Position numbers and translations under genes: made by a program. Below the pieces are notes generated by a model, which was not told where the DNA came from, did no database searches, and saw only the letters and a list, made by a program, of their open reading frames with translations. A stretch of DNA of 63,863 nt, the filler included, from Choristocarpus tenellus KU-1152 (taxonomy: Eukaryota > Protista > Phaeophyceae): NCBI GenBank assembly GCA_964200185.2. It is 13 parts of 13 records of this genome, joined end to end, with 100 filler letters (N's around TTAATTAATTAA, not from the genome) between each part and the next. Parts side by side here need not be neighbours in the genome. Positions count along the whole stretch, not along the records: positions 1 to 5,536 come from CAXNAD020010485.1; 12 more parts are not named here. One strand, 5' to 3'. Positions 1-5,536 of this stretch are shown here, piece after piece. Position 1 is the stretch's first letter; the number at the start of each line of letters is the position of its first letter.

Positions 1-465
1 CCTGGGCCCCCATGAGTGAGCCTTAGCCAGCAGGTGACAACATCGCATAAACGGGAAATAATGGAAAGAGAATGGAGAGACAACAACGCCCATGTTCTCC
101 AGGTGAAGGTCTCTTCTGGCGTCAAATCATCCTTAACTGCGCGGTTCGCACACACCGCGTGGCACCCACGCGCGATCCGCGCGCTGACTACATGATTTAA
201 GTATGACCCTGTATTTCTCACGATTCATGCAAGCTGACCAACCGAGACCCATCAAATAAGGTTAAGGGTGCTGATGCGATCACAACAAACAAATTTTCAT
301 GAAAAAAATCGTTGTTGATCCAAAGTTATGGGACGAGAAAGTTGATGCAGGAGGCGACTACCAACACTGTAGTGGTTGCATGTGGAATTGGATCTATTAA
401 GAACCACCTTTCCGTGAGAAGAATGGCATCGAATCAAATCGAACCCACGAAATTCATCAGGTACA

Positions 466-622
466 GACCCAAAGTATCTGGGGGGGGGAGGGGGTCAGCA
501 CCAGGGTGTCCATTTCGGTCATAGCCAGGAAAAGTACACTTACCTTATCCATCCGACGTGTGCAAGATAAAAAAAATGGCCCCAAATGGACAGCCGCCAC
601 CCCCTCCCAGATACTTTGAGTC
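466..622. mobile_element. MITE subfamily A, internally deleted copy
   Basis: TIRs GACCCAAAGTATCTGGG...CCCAGATACTTTGAGTC; 3-bp TSD ACA at 463-465 and 623-625; subterminal GTCCATTT motif at both ends. Confidence 0.9.
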
Positions 623-1924
623 ACATCGCATCCTAGCCACTATATTCTAGGTATAAAAATTAGTATCACATACCAGACTTCTTTTTCCCGTTGACCTTTA
701 CATCTGACAATACAATTTCTTTAGATTGAGGTTTGGTGGATTTACACTCTAATAATGTATCTGGTGTACATTTTTTAACCCAAGTATTTTTTTTTTAAGT
801 CTCCCATCCTACACACACATCTACACAACTCACAACAGGAAAATTCTTGTGGATGATTACCTCTCCCTTGTCTCTTGCTGTGTACATCACTACCACACCC
901 CCTCCAATACCATCACCATAACGAGTTCTGTCCGACCTCATCAGAACATACGAAACCCCAATATGTACACCAAATGAAACGCAAACTTTGGGGTGAAGAG
1001 GTCTTGATCAAGAAGACTTCTCCCCCACATCTTCAAACATCAAATTCGAATGTGAGAACTGCTTCCACTGTTCCCCATTTTCTTGTCGTGTTCGAAAAGC
1101 TGTGTCTACGTTTACAGAACTTGAACTTCCAATATATTATATACCATCTATCATATTCGTTCGTAAGATTACACTTCAAGGGTTAAGATATGCTGGCTAC
1201 ACTTGCTTCTTGCCCCAAACCTCTGCTTCCTATCTACCTCCCGATACTTCTTACCTTTTCACAGGGACGAACGGTTTGAGGGTCCTAACGTTAGTCTGTG
1301 GTTGTGGATTGTGATACATAGTGGATAGATCAGATCCTCTTCAATCGAACAAAGAAAGCGTCGACACACCTATTTGTTTTGTGGGCAGAGCATACCCCAA
1401 CCGATTTGATCTTGCGAGAGAAGTCTACTATTAATAGCCTCGCTTCGTCAACATTGACCACAAACCACCATGTATTTGCCAGGCGATGCCGAAGTGCAGG
1501 TCACTGATTGCTCATAGAGAACGCCGAATACCTCATCATTCTTACTTTGGGGTTGAGGCAGACAATAGAAGTTTGATTGGTGTCTAAAAACTTTGCTCAC
1601 TTCTTTTCAGTCAATAACAAAATACAACTTACGATGCTCTACCCCTATCACAATGTCAATACTCTCTCTCCCCTTGTCCATTGAACTGGGACCCTGCATC
1701 TTGCCCCAACAGACTGCAGCTAGTCCGGTGGTAGAGGAGGGCAGAGTCAATGTCTCCTGCGCTGGCCTCTCTCCTACCGCATCCCCATTGGACATTCCCG
1801 CGATAATAGAGTTCCTGCATACTCCATTTGTCCCATCACATTCCCAACCCGAAAGATGGTGAGTCTGATCAGGGATAGGACCGAACTTTGCTTGAACATC
1901 CCTCTTTTGTCAGCATTCTCGTCA

Positions 1925-2792
1925 CTCTGCTCCTACTCCCTTGAACAGGTTCATATACTTGTCAGACAACTCTTTCGATCCACTTCATCAACGCCAATCT
2001 GACTAGTCAATCTCAAAGTCATAATGTCAATGATGCGTCTTCACTCTTGTTCAAACGTGAATACTGTTCCTCCACTCACAAAGTTAACTCCTAAAAAACA
2101 GAGGTACGAAATCACTAAGTGTGATGCAGTGACAATAGTTAGTGGAATTCACAGCTTATCGTCAACTTCAAGACATCAATCACCTGCTGAAAGGCAGTGG
2201 TCAAAGCCTCATATTGTAAAGCCTGGAGGGGGGGTTCGATTAAATGGGTAGTGAACACTACTCCTCGGTTTCAATGTCGCAAGAGACTGAAGATTCTAAT
2301 GTATCTCAACTACATATTTTGAACACTCCAGTACCTTCTGTCTCTTTACTCAGGTACTAAGTATGCCTTGCTGTGTTTCAAGAACTAGTATTTTACGTAT
2401 TCCCCATACCCTTCTTCAGTCTCTTGCGACAATGAAACTGAGGAGTGGTGTTTCACTACCGCAGGAAATTGAAAGCTCCCTCCAGGCTTCGATAAAAGAG
2501 ACTTTCACCACTGCCACTGATCAGGCAGCTCGTGTCTTCAGCCTGAATATATGCTGTGAATATCCACCCACTATTGTCACCACGTCAGATTATATGTTTT
2601 TCGTGCTTCTGATACCTTATTGGGAATAATATTTGAGAGTGGATGATCAGTACCCTTTCACATGTCAAAAAGAGTGTATGCATATCGTTGATATTATGAC
2701 TCGATTGATTAGTCAGATTGGAGGTAATGACGTGGATTGAAAAGAGTTGCCAGGCAGGAACATGGAATCTGTTCATGGGAATAGGGTTGGAG
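1925..2792. repeat. Long imperfect inverted repeat (foldback), arms ~410 nt
   Basis: Nested complementary blocks, e.g. CCAATCTGACTAGTCAATC (1994) with GATTGATTAGTCAGATTGG (2703); GTGACAATAGT (2129) with ACTATTGTCAC (2570); AAGCCTGGAGGG with CCCTCCAGGCTT; TGTCGCAAGAGACTGAAGA with TCTTCAGTCTCTTGCGACA. Loop near 2338-2352. Confidence 0.9.
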
Positions 2793-2917
2793 GTTTGGAA
2801 AACACCTTGTCTTTGTTTCACCCTTTGAGCTTCTACTGAGCACTTATTCTTACCGCGTTCCCCTCCTGTCCCCCAACAAAAAGGGTTAACATTTTCCTCC
2901 AGCAAGTAGAGGTAGAG

Positions 2918-3175
2918 GAGTGAAAATATCTTAGAGGGTACGAGTTTTGCCTTGTTTGTCCATTTGGGGCTTGGCTTCTCTTGGGGGTTTTCATGACATT
3001 TTTCTACTCCAAAATGTTTTGGAGAAGGCAAAATGTGTATGATATGAAAAGGTGTGTCCAGAACATGGATATCTACACTTCCTAACAAACACAATAGCCA
3101 AAATTACATGAAAATCGCCAAATTGGATTTGACCCCCCAATGGACGCGGCTCTACCCTCTAAGATACTTTGACTC
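2918..3175. mobile_element. MITE subfamily B
   Basis: TIRs GAGTGAAAATATCTTAGAGGGTA...TACCCTCTAAGATACTTTGACTC; 4-bp TSD AGAG at 2914-2917 and 3176-3179. Confidence 0.92.
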
Positions 3176-3193
3176 AGAGAAGAAGATGGATTC

Positions 3194-3695
3194 TGGTCTC
3201 ACCAGACCCCTTGGTCACTGCTAAAACCTTCACATCCATAACGACATTGGGGACCTGCAGTTCCATATGCTACATATCATCTGGTATGTAATGGATTGAT
3301 TCGCCTCTTGGCTGATACAAGCCAAAAATGTATATATTTCTGCTGCTCTACCACTTTCCATGTTGGCTCTGTGGGTCTTACGCCTCATTTCCCATTTCCT
3401 TATCTCTTCACACACTAGAGGTAGAGAAAAAGAAGTCTTAAGAAGGAAGATATCTTAAGAAGAAAAAATATGTATCTACCTCTAGTATGTGAAGAGATCA
3501 GGATGTTGGCAATGAGGTGTGAGACCCATAGAGCCAACATAGAAAGTGCTAGAACAGCAGAAATGACTTGCATCAGCCAAGAGGTGAATCAATCCATTTA
3601 CAGATCAAATGGCATGTAGCATATGGAACTGTAGGTCCCCAGTGTTACTATGGATGTGAAGGTTTTTGCAGTGACCAAGGGATCTGGTGAGACCA
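3194..3695. repeat. Long inverted repeat (foldback), arms 3194-3425 and 3475-3695
   Basis: Arms are reverse-complementary over ~220 nt (TGGTCTCACCAGA...CTAGAGGTAGA / TCTACCTCTAG...TCTGGTGAGACCA). The 49-nt purine-rich loop contains TCTTAAGAAG twice. Confidence 0.95.
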
Positions 3696-4308
3696 AGATG
3701 TCTGCCCTGCAAAAGGAGTAGGAGAGTGGGTGAAGAAGACTATGACTAGTTTGAACATGGGATATAGTTGGCTCGATTTTGTATGTACAAGAAATATATT
3801 TGGAGTACAGCATCACAACAAAATGCATATGATAGCATGAGATGTCTCTCACAGTAGTTCCCAATGTGCAACAATGTGGAGAATAGTTTTGTAGGATGAC
3901 ACAGTTGTTCTCGTCCTATTCTATATTATTGCAACACACCAACATACATTGTTCTATAGCCAATGCCAGATTTGCACCACCTTTGTCTAATTGTTTGGGT
4001 GAATCCTCTACCCAATCCCATCATTTCCCAGAACCCGGAGGCAGAAAAGGCTGCCAACATATCTCTATGACAGGCATCTGCTGCAAAGGACAGGGTGAGT
4101 TACTATTTTCTTTCAAGAATGATTGACACAGAAGGCATTGGGTGGCGAGGAAAGCAGTACAAATGGGGTAGCTTTAGTCAGTTGAAGAGCATGCCACCCT
4201 GTGTTGGGTCTGAGGGCAAAGATTGGACTTGCCAGGTGCACGAAGCTGAATGGAATTGTTCTGAAATGGTTGTCAAAAATCGGATACTGGGCTAGAAGCC
4301 CTTCTATG

Positions 4309-4565
4309 TGCAGCCTGTTGCACACCAGAAAGGTTCACCTTGTAGGATATGTCTCATAATACTGAGGCCTCTCATGTGTTGCTGGTTTGAGTATCACATC
4401 ATATACCTTTCCTCGTTCGTGTGTGACATAGGAGGGCATTCATTGTAGGAAGATGGTTTTCTCGTTAGGAAAAGAGTATCTTACCTTACTGATTGGTGCT
4501 ATCTTGGATCCAATCAACCTATTGTAGAGACATCCTTGCTCTGGATACACCTGTAAGGGTTGTAT
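4309..4565. repeat. Degenerate foldback
   Basis: Nested pairs AGGATATGTCTCATAATA/TATTGTAGAGACATCCT, TGGTTTGAGTATCAC/GTGCTATCTTGGATCCA and ATACCTTTCCT/AGGAAAAGAGTAT. Confidence 0.55.
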
Positions 4566-4569
4566 ACAT

Positions 4570-4665
4570 ATTAGGTAACTGTGTTCACACAGGCACCAAA
4601 AAAAAGGAATAAAAAACACATGGAAAGACAAGCCCAACAGGGTAAAACCTACCCTCTGAAATTCT
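4570..4665. mobile_element. Fragment of MITE subfamily C
   Basis: Aligns by eye to 6165-6260 (TTAGGTAAC..CTGTGTTCACACAG...AACAGGG.AAAAC..CTACCCTCT). Confidence 0.65.
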
Positions 4666-5512
4666 TGATGTCGAAAATAGTTGTTACATTTTGTGAAGAA
4701 CACACTACATAATTTGGGGTGTAATTGTTATGATTGCTAGGGTAAGTGACATGATTGAAGAGTACAACTTTCAGGAACGGAATGGAATTATTGCACCGAG
4801 CAAAAATGAAGCGTTTTGTGTGCGAGGGGTCAGGTCCTTTCTTCTCAACTTTGTCATAAATTGCTGATGGGAATTATAGTCTATTGCCATTGAATATTTT
4901 GTGTTGAGGGATAGATCTGCTTGGGGAAATCCAACAGTTGTGCCAGTTTGCTGCAAATCCACGCATTACCGGGCATTGGTGAGGTACACAACTACCTCCT
5001 TGCACGGTCGATGTTTGAAGATTAGTGTCCTGGACTGGTGTTGAAATGTAGCACACTTGATCTCATCACTCCATTCTCTTTCCTCACATGCTCCTATTCC
5101 TATCCCCTCCACTTTTCCAGGCTACATCGCATGCGGTGCCGTGTACACCAAAGGCCTTCCACAGGTCTTTGAACAGGACTCCCCTCCTTGTGGGAAACTG
5201 GCAGCTGGAAAGGAGAATGGTACCCCTGGCCATCGCTATAGGTCTGGAGCTAAGGCATGGACTCCTCTGGGAGTCACCATGGGTGAAAATGTGTCAACTC
5301 TCCAAGGTAAAGATATGTGATATGTTTGTGTATGTGTGTGACTGGGGGGTGGTGTTTTAGAGCCTTCCACTTAGCATTCGGTACAAACTGATCAAGCCTG
5401 CACAGAAATATACCATTTGAAGAGGTCTTGGCACTTGTACTTTTTGTTGCACCTACAGAAGGGTAACTGTTATGATTTTCCATCCCTGCCCCTTTGTTAT
5501 GTGCCATGCAGT

Positions 5513-5536
5513 TGTTGAATTATCCCACACTGGACC
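5513..5536 (+). mobile_element. Terminus of a repeat family (probable LTR, starts TG) at a contig end
   Basis: TGTTGAATTATCCCACACTGGACC recurs at 31884 (TGTTGAACTATCCCACACTGGACC...); both copies run into contig ends. Confidence 0.55.

Follow-up and report, generated by a model that had tools for sequence, protein, structure and literature searches.

Two long foldbacks in the first intron of an expressed gene of Choristocarpus tenellus, probable products of local inverted duplication

An Expressed and Spliced Gene

The window, i.e., the whole stretch of 63,863 nucleotides (filler included) analysed from Choristocarpus tenellus KU-1152, is composed of 13 parts of 13 records. The locus described here lies in the first part (positions 1–5536, CAXNAD020010485.1), and all positions are those of the window. 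The gene content of the genome looks brown-algal: LHC matches numbered at least 63, and candidates for the EsV-1-7 motif at least 404. The locus probably represents the 5' portion of a gene that is expressed from the + strand and spliced. In the public run X3, a spliced contig of 812 nt with a depth of 302.6 covered positions 1180–1857 with 0 differences and contained two GT..AG joints, 1857>4031 and 4093>5120 (both cut at +1). Pieces of intron were present in the same run at a depth of 1–25, as compared to 302.6 for the spliced contig. X3 has no recorded library type, and the run was taken as RNA-derived because of the two canonical joints and the 50–100-fold excess in depth. The joints were not found in runs X1 and X2, and exon-by-exon searches of the assembly detected no intron-less copy.

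Exon 1 covered positions 1180–1858, its 5' end being a lower bound since the RNA contig begins at 1180. Intron 1 (2173 nt, 1859–4031) was delimited by the first X3 joint and contained two long foldbacks and a MITE. Exon 2 (63 nt, 4032–4094) was flanked by GT..AG joints on both sides. Intron 2 (1026 nt, 4095–5120) contained a high-copy element (4532–4667, approximately 135 nt), and no significant foldback when folding was compared to shuffles or in the sliding scan. Exon 3 started at position 5121 and the RNA contig extended to approximately 5190; its end was placed at 5306 because of the GT at 5307 and of the same donor sequence in the paralogues C716 and C25533. Where the first-pass annotation saw no recognisable exon, there are therefore three, with canonical splice sites backed by the X3 spliced contig. 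An A>G difference at 4059 in this contig, examined as possible RNA editing, is a polymorphism, as it was also present in a DNA contig of X2. Other joints in X1 and X2, within 1335–1914, had sides of 20–23 nt and a high depth, and were set aside as repeat-derived. No tRNA was found.

Coding searches were performed exon by exon. No long ORF left exon 1 in the frame of exons 2 and 3, and Pfam gave no match for the ORF of exon 1, for the frames of exons 2 and 3 or for other ORFs. When the 61-aa peptide of exon 3 was used in an exhaustive HMMER search, six matches were returned (E-values from 3.5e-10 to 6.7e-5), all of them to unrelated repeat proteins (HYR repeats, DUF5907/fibritin-like repeats, CBM repeats). 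They were not taken as homology because a short motif was summed over repeats, with 3–7 matched stretches per protein. Exon 3 showed frameshifting indels in C716 and C25533, the exons were conserved no better than the introns, and the ORFs located downstream in C716 included nothing suggestive. As the host transcript has no convincing ORF, it is possible that the gene is a non-coding host with an intronic product.

Two Long Foldbacks in Intron 1

The two long inverted repeats first noticed at 1925–2792 and 3194–3695 were recovered by self-BLAST. Foldback 1 (1932–2785) consisted of a left arm at 1932–2293, a loop at 2294–2412 and a right arm at 2413–2785, the arms being approximately 76% alike (69% over 879 aligned columns with gaps). 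In foldback 2 (3194–3695), the left arm (3194–3425) and the right arm (3475–3695) were approximately 87% alike (79% over 516 columns with gaps) and were separated by a loop at 3426–3474 containing a 17-nt tandem pair. The ungapped blocks of both were 85–93% complementary. Compared to dinucleotide shuffles, the RNA minimum free energies were extreme, −405.6 kcal/mol for foldback 1 (z = −26.8) and −346.2 kcal/mol for foldback 2 (z = −35.9). The longest perfect Watson–Crick run was 19 bp in foldback 1 and 18 bp in foldback 2, so that neither contained a perfect duplex of 21 bp or more; with G.U counted, pairing runs in foldback 2 reached 33 bp on the + strand. Self-comparison agreed with the initial impression that the foldbacks have no kinship to each other or to the MITEs.

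The draft assembly is broken up into 27,310 contigs, and palindromic chimeras could arise in it during assembly or amplification. Such artefacts would have near-identical arms, unlike the 76–87% observed here. In addition, a 2346-nt contig of sample X1 covered 599–2944, and a contig of the second DNA sample, X2, covered 3209–3511, running from the left arm of foldback 2 through the loop and into the right arm. The arm–loop junctions were therefore bridged by contigs of two different samples, both with 0 differences from the window, which argues against assembly chimeras and makes an artefactual origin hardly credible.

In the minimum free energy fold of intron 1, 1626 of the 2173 nt were predicted to lie in three unbranched hairpins, at 1925–2792 (306 pairs), 2918–3175 (65 pairs) and 3195–3694 (210 pairs). 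On transcription, the intron should collapse into these three independent structures.

Weaker Stems and Density of Foldbacks

Five weaker nested stems had also been described, with the reservation that they could individually be chance. The reservation was justified. Folding of both strands against shuffles gave z-scores of +0.98/+0.82 for 1360–1585, −3.4/−2.2 for 3865–3935, −2.3/+0.3 for 4309–4565, −0.9/−0.4 for 4820–5005 and −2.5/−1.8 for 5070–5220. This range, from +1.0 to −3.4, is at the level of chance, and the five stems were rejected as real foldbacks. A sliding scan of 160 nt on the + strand concurred: the apex of foldback 2 (3361–3560) was the sole standout, with a z-score of about −8.4, followed by the apex of foldback 1 (−3.35), the core of the MITE (−3.3) and the segment 121–280 (−3.0). 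As the weaker stems do not exceed chance, the contig is not tiled with foldbacks packed end to end, as had been proposed; it holds just two of them and the known MITEs, together with the three exons. The impression of tiled stems gained by eye thus fails against shuffling controls.

An unusual density of foldbacks was not borne out either. By the same self-BLAST criterion, eight long foldbacks were present in 60.6 kb of other loci of this genome, a background sample that is biased because these loci had been fetched as flanks of repeat matches. The expectation was 0.73 per 5.5 kb as compared to the two seen (P(≥2) = 0.17), and the density is therefore not clearly above this biased background. 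The notion of a structured intron or polycistronic small-RNA locus was supported in one part, both foldbacks lying in an intron of an expressed, spliced transcript and on its sense strand, and not in the other, two foldbacks and MITEs not constituting a cluster.

The MITEs and the Paralogues

The MITE located between the two foldbacks (2918–3176, z = −8.4) has 23-nt terminal inverted repeats and belongs to a very high-copy family, with a word depth in X1 of 4–8 × 10^5 vs. about 20 for its flanks. Its site was empty in the paralogues C716 and C1631. A shorter member of the same family was present at 466–622 (z = −6.0). Foldback MITEs are abundant in this genome, with at least 319 candidates for a 313-nt family and at least 104 for a 251-nt family.

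With two MITEs in the window and a genome so rich in them, the long foldbacks might themselves be decayed low-copy foldback or MITE-type transposons, the single arms found elsewhere being half-elements. The distribution of copies makes this improbable. A whole-genome search for each foldback, reaching to approximately 70% identity, found no second full copy of either one; full foldbacks occurred only in the window, and single arms in C716, C1631 and C27132. No direct repeats flanked the foldbacks, the flank pairs being ACTCTGCT / GTTGGAGG and ATGGATTC / AGATGTCT, and thus no target-site duplication was visible. The arms are not high-copy transposon termini with such duplications, the circumstance named at the outset as refuting a small-RNA cluster; as foldbacks, they occur at a single locus. 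In a five-sequence alignment, the two arms of foldback 2 grouped together against C716, C1631 and C27132, sharing derived states, which is also at odds with half-elements.

The paralogue C716 was colinear with positions 798–5512 of the window at 72–84% identity and possessed one arm of each foldback. The segment 2336–2917, which includes the right part of the foldback 1 loop (2336–2412) and the whole right arm, corresponded to C716 1958–2522 at 75%. The only match in C716 to the left arm of foldback 1, at 2348–2038, was the single copy read in reverse complement. Similarly, the segment 3492–4516 corresponded to C716 2545–3507 at 76%, the right arm of foldback 2 being colinear with the paralogues and the homology unbroken to 4516; the left arm was missing from C716, C1631 and C27132. 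In both foldbacks, one arm was therefore colinear with an unduplicated paralogue and the other was an extra inverted copy lying alongside. The homology with C716 continued uninterrupted beyond the outer end of both arms, so that the arms are not discrete units, a further argument against transposons.

At the site of foldback 2, C716 and C1631 have one simple junction in common. In the window, the order was the junction, the inverted arm, a repeat of the first 20 nt or so of the junction, and the direct arm. The motif, TAGAGGTAGAG followed by an A/G-rich run, occurred once in C716 and C1631, directly upstream of the single arm, and twice in the window: at 2907–2917, where the copy is interrupted by the MITE, and at 3416–3435 (+ strand). 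Nothing comparable was observed at foldback 1, where the adjoining segment 1569–1931 was also inverted relative to C716. A simple two-event model leaves this inversion unexplained, and the history is therefore more complex than the one proposed below.

Divergence of the Arms

The sites informative on the right arm (R), the left arm (L) and the paralogue (P) were distributed almost evenly, with 34, 42 and 28 sites supporting R=L, R=P and L=P, respectively, for foldback 1, and 16, 10 and 14 for foldback 2. A star tree was not rejected in either case (p = 0.24 and 0.50), which suggests that the three sequences are about equidistant. The polarity could be either an arm inserted in the lineage of the window or an arm lost in the paralogues. 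On the transcribed strand, mismatches preserving a wobble pair (G.U) and mismatches breaking it (A.C) were in a ratio of 22:20 in foldback 1 and 10:10 in foldback 2; this equality gives no sign of selection for pairing. Neutral-looking arm divergence is likewise a property of young plant MIRNA and hpRNA loci.

It could be argued that the hairpins are kept as an aid to splicing, shortening the effective length of intron 1 and bringing its splice sites together. The intron is spliced efficiently and three quarters of it (the 1626 nt mentioned above) are predicted to be in independent hairpins. The argument starts from a predicted fold, the pairing shows no trace of selection, and C716 is devoid of the extra arms; such a role appears very unlikely.

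A Model of Local Inverted Duplication

We consider it probable that the foldbacks are single-locus, neutrally decaying local inverted duplications in one intron, which would fold in the pre-mRNA. In this model, the 2.2-kb first intron gained two separate duplications. Both times, some 220–370 nt of intron sequence would have been copied in reverse and set just upstream of the template. The outcome would be b-C'-loop-C at foldback 1 and j-D'-j-D at foldback 2, in place of the b-C and j-D of the paralogue. Template switching or fold-back repair in replication, and not transposition, would be the likely cause. The MITE would have landed between the foldbacks afterwards. The duplications may be about as old as the one that gave rise to the paralogue C716, and the arms would since have diverged like neutral sequence, apparently with no function. 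As it stands, the locus mainly indicates that MITEs are not the only origin of long intronic foldbacks in this genome, local inverted duplication being another.

Brown-algal miRNAs are considered to originate from transcribed intronic hairpins of this kind, and the ones described here may leak some 21-nt RNAs. Nothing indicates a selected small-RNA locus, and it is possible that they represent raw material for small RNAs.

Small RNAs as a Possible Product

One or both foldbacks could be more than raw material and function as precursors of small RNAs, as a young miRNA locus or as a long-hairpin locus for endo-siRNAs, in which the single brown-algal Dicer would cut the excised or unspliced intron; the exons may then belong to a non-coding host transcript. 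The foldbacks do lie in an intron, on the sense strand of a well-expressed transcript, and transcription of a self-complementary precursor is suggested by the host gene and the low-depth X3 intron pieces. The hairpins are very stable, with the foldback 2 runs described above, and the host lacks a convincing ORF, exon 3 being frameshifted in both paralogues. In Ectocarpus, RISC-bound small RNAs are enriched for an intronic origin (PMC12867755). Nevertheless, the absence of any perfect duplex of 21 bp or more, the lack of an excess of pairing-preserving changes and a length three to five times the Ectocarpus mean of 170 nt make such precursors unlikely. The mRNA targets envisaged for the arms were not found either: in the genome-wide search, their only relatives were paralogous, non-exonic segments, so that no target was visible. 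Rfam did not help this reading, as the foldbacks had no homology to any miRNA family described there. The matches, to three unrelated plant MIR models, were structure-only, sub-threshold and present on both strands; the best one, to MIR5380, shared almost no bases and reached 65.8 bits, far below the gathering score of 150, and all were rejected as generic long-hairpin matches.

A more specific variant would combine a non-coding spliced host with the intronic hairpins as its products. In that case, inverted duplication would have given rise to an endo-siRNA locus of the hpRNA type in a brown alga. This locus would act on its own paralogous copies C716 and C1631, and would exemplify the AGO-loaded small RNAs of intronic origin that were reported in Ectocarpus and are unexplained. 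We regard this as a long shot. If the hairpins yield AGO-loaded 21-nt RNAs, the locus would capture the birth of a small-RNA gene at an early stage in the brown algae, an independently multicellular lineage. The founding inverted duplication would still be readable, with the unduplicated paralogue as a control.

Comparison with Known Systems

The MITEs and foldback transposons of this genome resemble the long foldbacks in their similar size and in the inverted symmetry of the whole element. The MITEs are present in hundreds to tens of thousands of copies, whereas each long foldback has one. Unlike MITEs, the foldbacks show no target-site duplication, and their arm ends are not homology boundaries in C716.

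In Drosophila-type hpRNA endo-siRNA loci, the arms are near-perfect and target genes can be identified. These loci share with the present one arms of hundreds of nucleotides and a single self-folding transcription unit. The arms described here differ in being 76–87% alike and in having perfect runs that all stay below 21 bp; neither an extended near-perfect double strand within them nor, in the whole-genome search, a trans target homologous to them was found.

The miRNA loci of Ectocarpus are located in genes in 75% of the cases, mostly in introns and on the same strand, and it was proposed that new miRNA loci stem from genomic hairpins inside introns (Tarver et al. 2015, PMC4513859). The set was later extended to 354 loci, with putative miRNA genes defined from inverted repeats (PMC12867755). 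The likeness to the present locus lies in the self-complementary intronic sequence, the strand of the host gene and the expression of the host. The Ectocarpus loci rest on sequenced miRNA/miRNA* pairs, whereas the foldbacks here are known from DNA sequence and a host transcript, and they measure 502 and 854 nt as compared to 170 nt on average for the foldbacks of Ectocarpus miRNAs (PMC4513859).

The model of young plant MIRNA genes differs in its arms, which copy a protein-coding target gene, whereas here they copy adjoining intron sequence, with no target apparent. Such genes and proto-miRNAs are reportedly born by inverted duplication, and the foldbacks of C. tenellus resemble them as long imperfect hairpins, likely derived from a local inverted duplication, lineage-specific and fast-evolving.

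Two Long Foldbacks in Contig C10485

Within an assembly of 164 Mb in 27,310 contigs, C10485 contained exactly two long inverted repeats, located by mechanical repeat finding and self-BLAST at positions 1932–2785 (foldback 1, arms 1932–2293 and 2413–2785) and 3194–3695 (foldback 2, arms 3194–3425 and 3475–3695). The only other inverted-repeat match came from a MITE at 466–622, through its short terminal repeats. Both long repeats had been pointed out in the first-pass annotation and were recovered here. Their RNA folds, of −405.6 and −346.2 kcal/mol, were more stable than dinucleotide shuffles by 27 and 36 standard deviations, respectively, on either strand. A contig of the public run X1 spanned 599–2944 without difference, crossing foldback 1, and a contig of run X2 spanned 3209–3511 with zero differences, covering the left arm, the loop and the start of the right arm of foldback 2. 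As these contigs were built independently from two samples, the structures are genuine. The two foldbacks are real and unusual-looking.

The same annotation had described a contig tiled with foldbacks, an observation which was half right: the two long structures stood, but the tiling did not. The five weaker stems failed the shuffle control (z-scores from +0.98 to −3.4), and a sliding scan of 160 nt showed strong structure only at the apex of foldback 2 (z about −8.4). With the same self-BLAST criterion, eight long foldbacks were found in 60.6 kb of other loci of the genome, a biased sample against which two foldbacks per 5.5 kb represent no significant excess (P = 0.17).

A Spliced Host Transcript

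An 812 nt contig of run X3, with a depth of 302.6, matched positions 1180–1857 with zero differences, continued at 4031–4093 and then from 5120 on. Both joints were of the GT..AG type after a one-base shift. On the plus strand, this defined exon 1 (1180–1858), intron 1 (1859–4031), exon 2 (4032–4094), intron 2 (4095–5120) and exon 3, running from 5121 to probably 5306, where a GT donor is common to the paralogues. Three exons were thus present where none had been thought recognisable. Intron pieces had a depth of 1–25 in X3, compared to 302.6 for the spliced contig, and no joints like those of X3 were seen in X1 and X2; X3 is therefore read as RNA-derived. An exon-by-exon search of the assembly showed no intron-less copy. 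At position 4059, the spliced contig had a G and the assembly an A; RNA editing was ruled out, as the X2 DNA contig had the same G, which marks an allele. A TATA-like run (TATATTATATA) at 1133–1143, some 40 nt before the spliced contig begins (1180), is only a hint of a promoter, as transcription need not start where the contig does.

Intron 1 contained, in its sense strand, both long foldbacks and a MITE (2918–3176). The predicted fold of the whole intron consisted of three independent unbranched hairpins (1925–2792, 2918–3175 and 3195–3694), occupying 1626 of its 2173 nt.

Followed back into exon 1, the frame that stays open in exons 2 and 3 meets a stop 17 codons from that exon's end. Exon-wise frames of the transcript gave zero family matches in Pfam. 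When the exon 3 peptide was searched exhaustively, the only matches were to unrelated repeat proteins, through short motifs. Exon 3 was frameshifted in both paralogous contigs C716 and C25533, and exons were no better conserved than introns. The host transcript, examined exon by exon, showed no convincing ORF. The exon 3 frame (5123–5305, plus strand) would specify a 61-aa peptide with the motif GTP.HRYRSG...WTP.GVTMG.N, resembling the repeat units of HYR-domain and DUF5907/fibritin-like repeat proteins.

Paralogues and Origin of the Foldbacks

Searched genome-wide down to about 70% identity, neither foldback showed a second full copy. Contig C716 was colinear with window positions 798–5512 (72–84% identity) and possessed only the right arm of each foldback, the homology passing unbroken through the outer ends of both right arms. 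Single arms of foldback 2 also existed in the paralogous contigs C1631 and C27132, and no direct repeat flanked foldback 1 or 2. Taken together, these observations argue against the arms being transposon termini.

In C716 and C1631, the junction at foldback 2 showed the TAGAGGTAGAG motif and an A/G-rich run ending in GATTC, followed by the arm. In the window, the order was the junction (split by the MITE), the inverted arm, the junction's first ~20 nt once more, and the direct arm. From this order we infer that template switching is the most likely origin of foldback 2: two switches during replication would have produced junction, inverted copy, junction again and template. Foldback 1 was arranged in the same general way, an additional inverted copy lying directly upstream of the template, and its history is more complex than the two-step layout. 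Segment 1569–1931 (the 3' part of exon 1 and the splice donor) was inverted relative to C716 1567–1933, both flanks having the same orientation. C716 also carried a partial second copy of this segment (1271–1508) and its own 64-nt palindrome (1890–1953) at the junction that is occupied in the window by the left arm of foldback 1.

Window positions 4316–4530 were 98% identical over 215 nt to C25533 2387–2601, the neighbouring 4673–5308 being only 83% identical; this is suggestive of a recent event, either gene conversion or movement of the piece. C716 aligned poorly at 4302–4361. C1631 possessed a private 450-nt foldback (1758–2207, arms 80% alike) about 365 nt beyond the end of homology to the window, unique as a whole and built of ~50-nt motifs recurring at many loci. 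Run X4, from a sample of the same study labelled as a different organism (organism B), contained pieces corresponding to 2229–2408, 3482–3638, 4158–4436 and 4648–4843, among them the loop of foldback 1 and the inner part of its left arm. With 0–2 differences, organism B is a very close relative and brings no evolutionary depth.

The MITE family of positions 2918–3176 and 466–622 (terminal repeats GAGTCAAAGTATCT...) was also seen in C716 (4644–4903), C1631 (697–945) and C25533 (2130–2393). As the position differed in each paralogue, the insertions post-date the segmental duplication. Word depth reached 10^5–10^6 in runs with single-copy flanks at about 20, indicating tens of thousands of copies. 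C10485 begins inside a high-copy element (1–380; 2364 first-look candidates, about 85% identity). Four other loci were checked, and three of them had a whole-element foldback of 313 nt, with at least 319 candidates, some 425–450 nt past the end matching position 1; a larger composite transposon may therefore include the element. Positions 4532–4667 contain a short element (about 135 nt, at least 560 first-look candidates) with no significant fold; its right end is similar to the MITE terminus.

Age and Divergence of the Arms

Right arm, left arm and C716 copy were nearly equidistant, with three-way identities of 76/78/75% for foldback 1 and 87/85/87% for foldback 2. Site patterns (right = left/right = paralogue/left = paralogue) of 34/42/28 and 16/10/14, respectively, showed no departure from a star tree. 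The inverted duplications are thus of about the same age as the segmental duplication, the arms having diverged at the pace of unlinked copies. In a five-sequence alignment of foldback 2, the two window arms shared several states against all three paralogues, which fits a duplication within the window lineage. Selection for pairing in the plus-strand RNA would make G.U-giving transitions outnumber A.C-giving ones; the ratios were 22:20 and 10:10, with no G.U excess in either foldback. The longest perfect helices measured 19 and 18 bp. The available evidence points to neutral decay of the foldbacks.

Comparison with Brown-Algal Small-RNA Loci

Brown algae have a greatly enlarged family of the EsV-1-7 cysteine-rich motif. 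The genome contained at least 404 candidates for this motif, all 150 of those scored passing the cut-off. The light-harvesting protein family gave at least 63 matches, many of them lying in one uninterrupted reading frame, and no nuclear-receptor zinc finger was found in the genome. The earlier guess of a brown-algal setting was reasonable on these counts. An Rfam match to MIR5380, scoring 65.8 bits where the gathering threshold is 150 and occurring on both strands with very few bases in common, was rejected as reflecting shape only.

The proposed small-RNA locus is plausible in kind, but its defining feature is unsupported and neutral decay is indicated. We regard the locus as an intronic inverted duplication and possibly a proto-small-RNA locus. 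Its value lies in a birth event still legible and an unduplicated paralogue available as control. In Ectocarpus, miRNA foldbacks have a mean size of 170 nt, 75% of the loci lie in genes, mostly in introns and in the orientation of the host gene, and genomic hairpins inside introns have been proposed as their source (PMC4513859). AGO-bound small RNAs are enriched for intronic origin, and putative miRNA genes have been defined from inverted repeats (PMC12867755). Foldbacks 1 and 2 are like the Ectocarpus loci in being intronic and on the host sense strand, and unlike them in being three to five times longer than typical. By this analogy, they would be rightly placed to become small-RNA genes.
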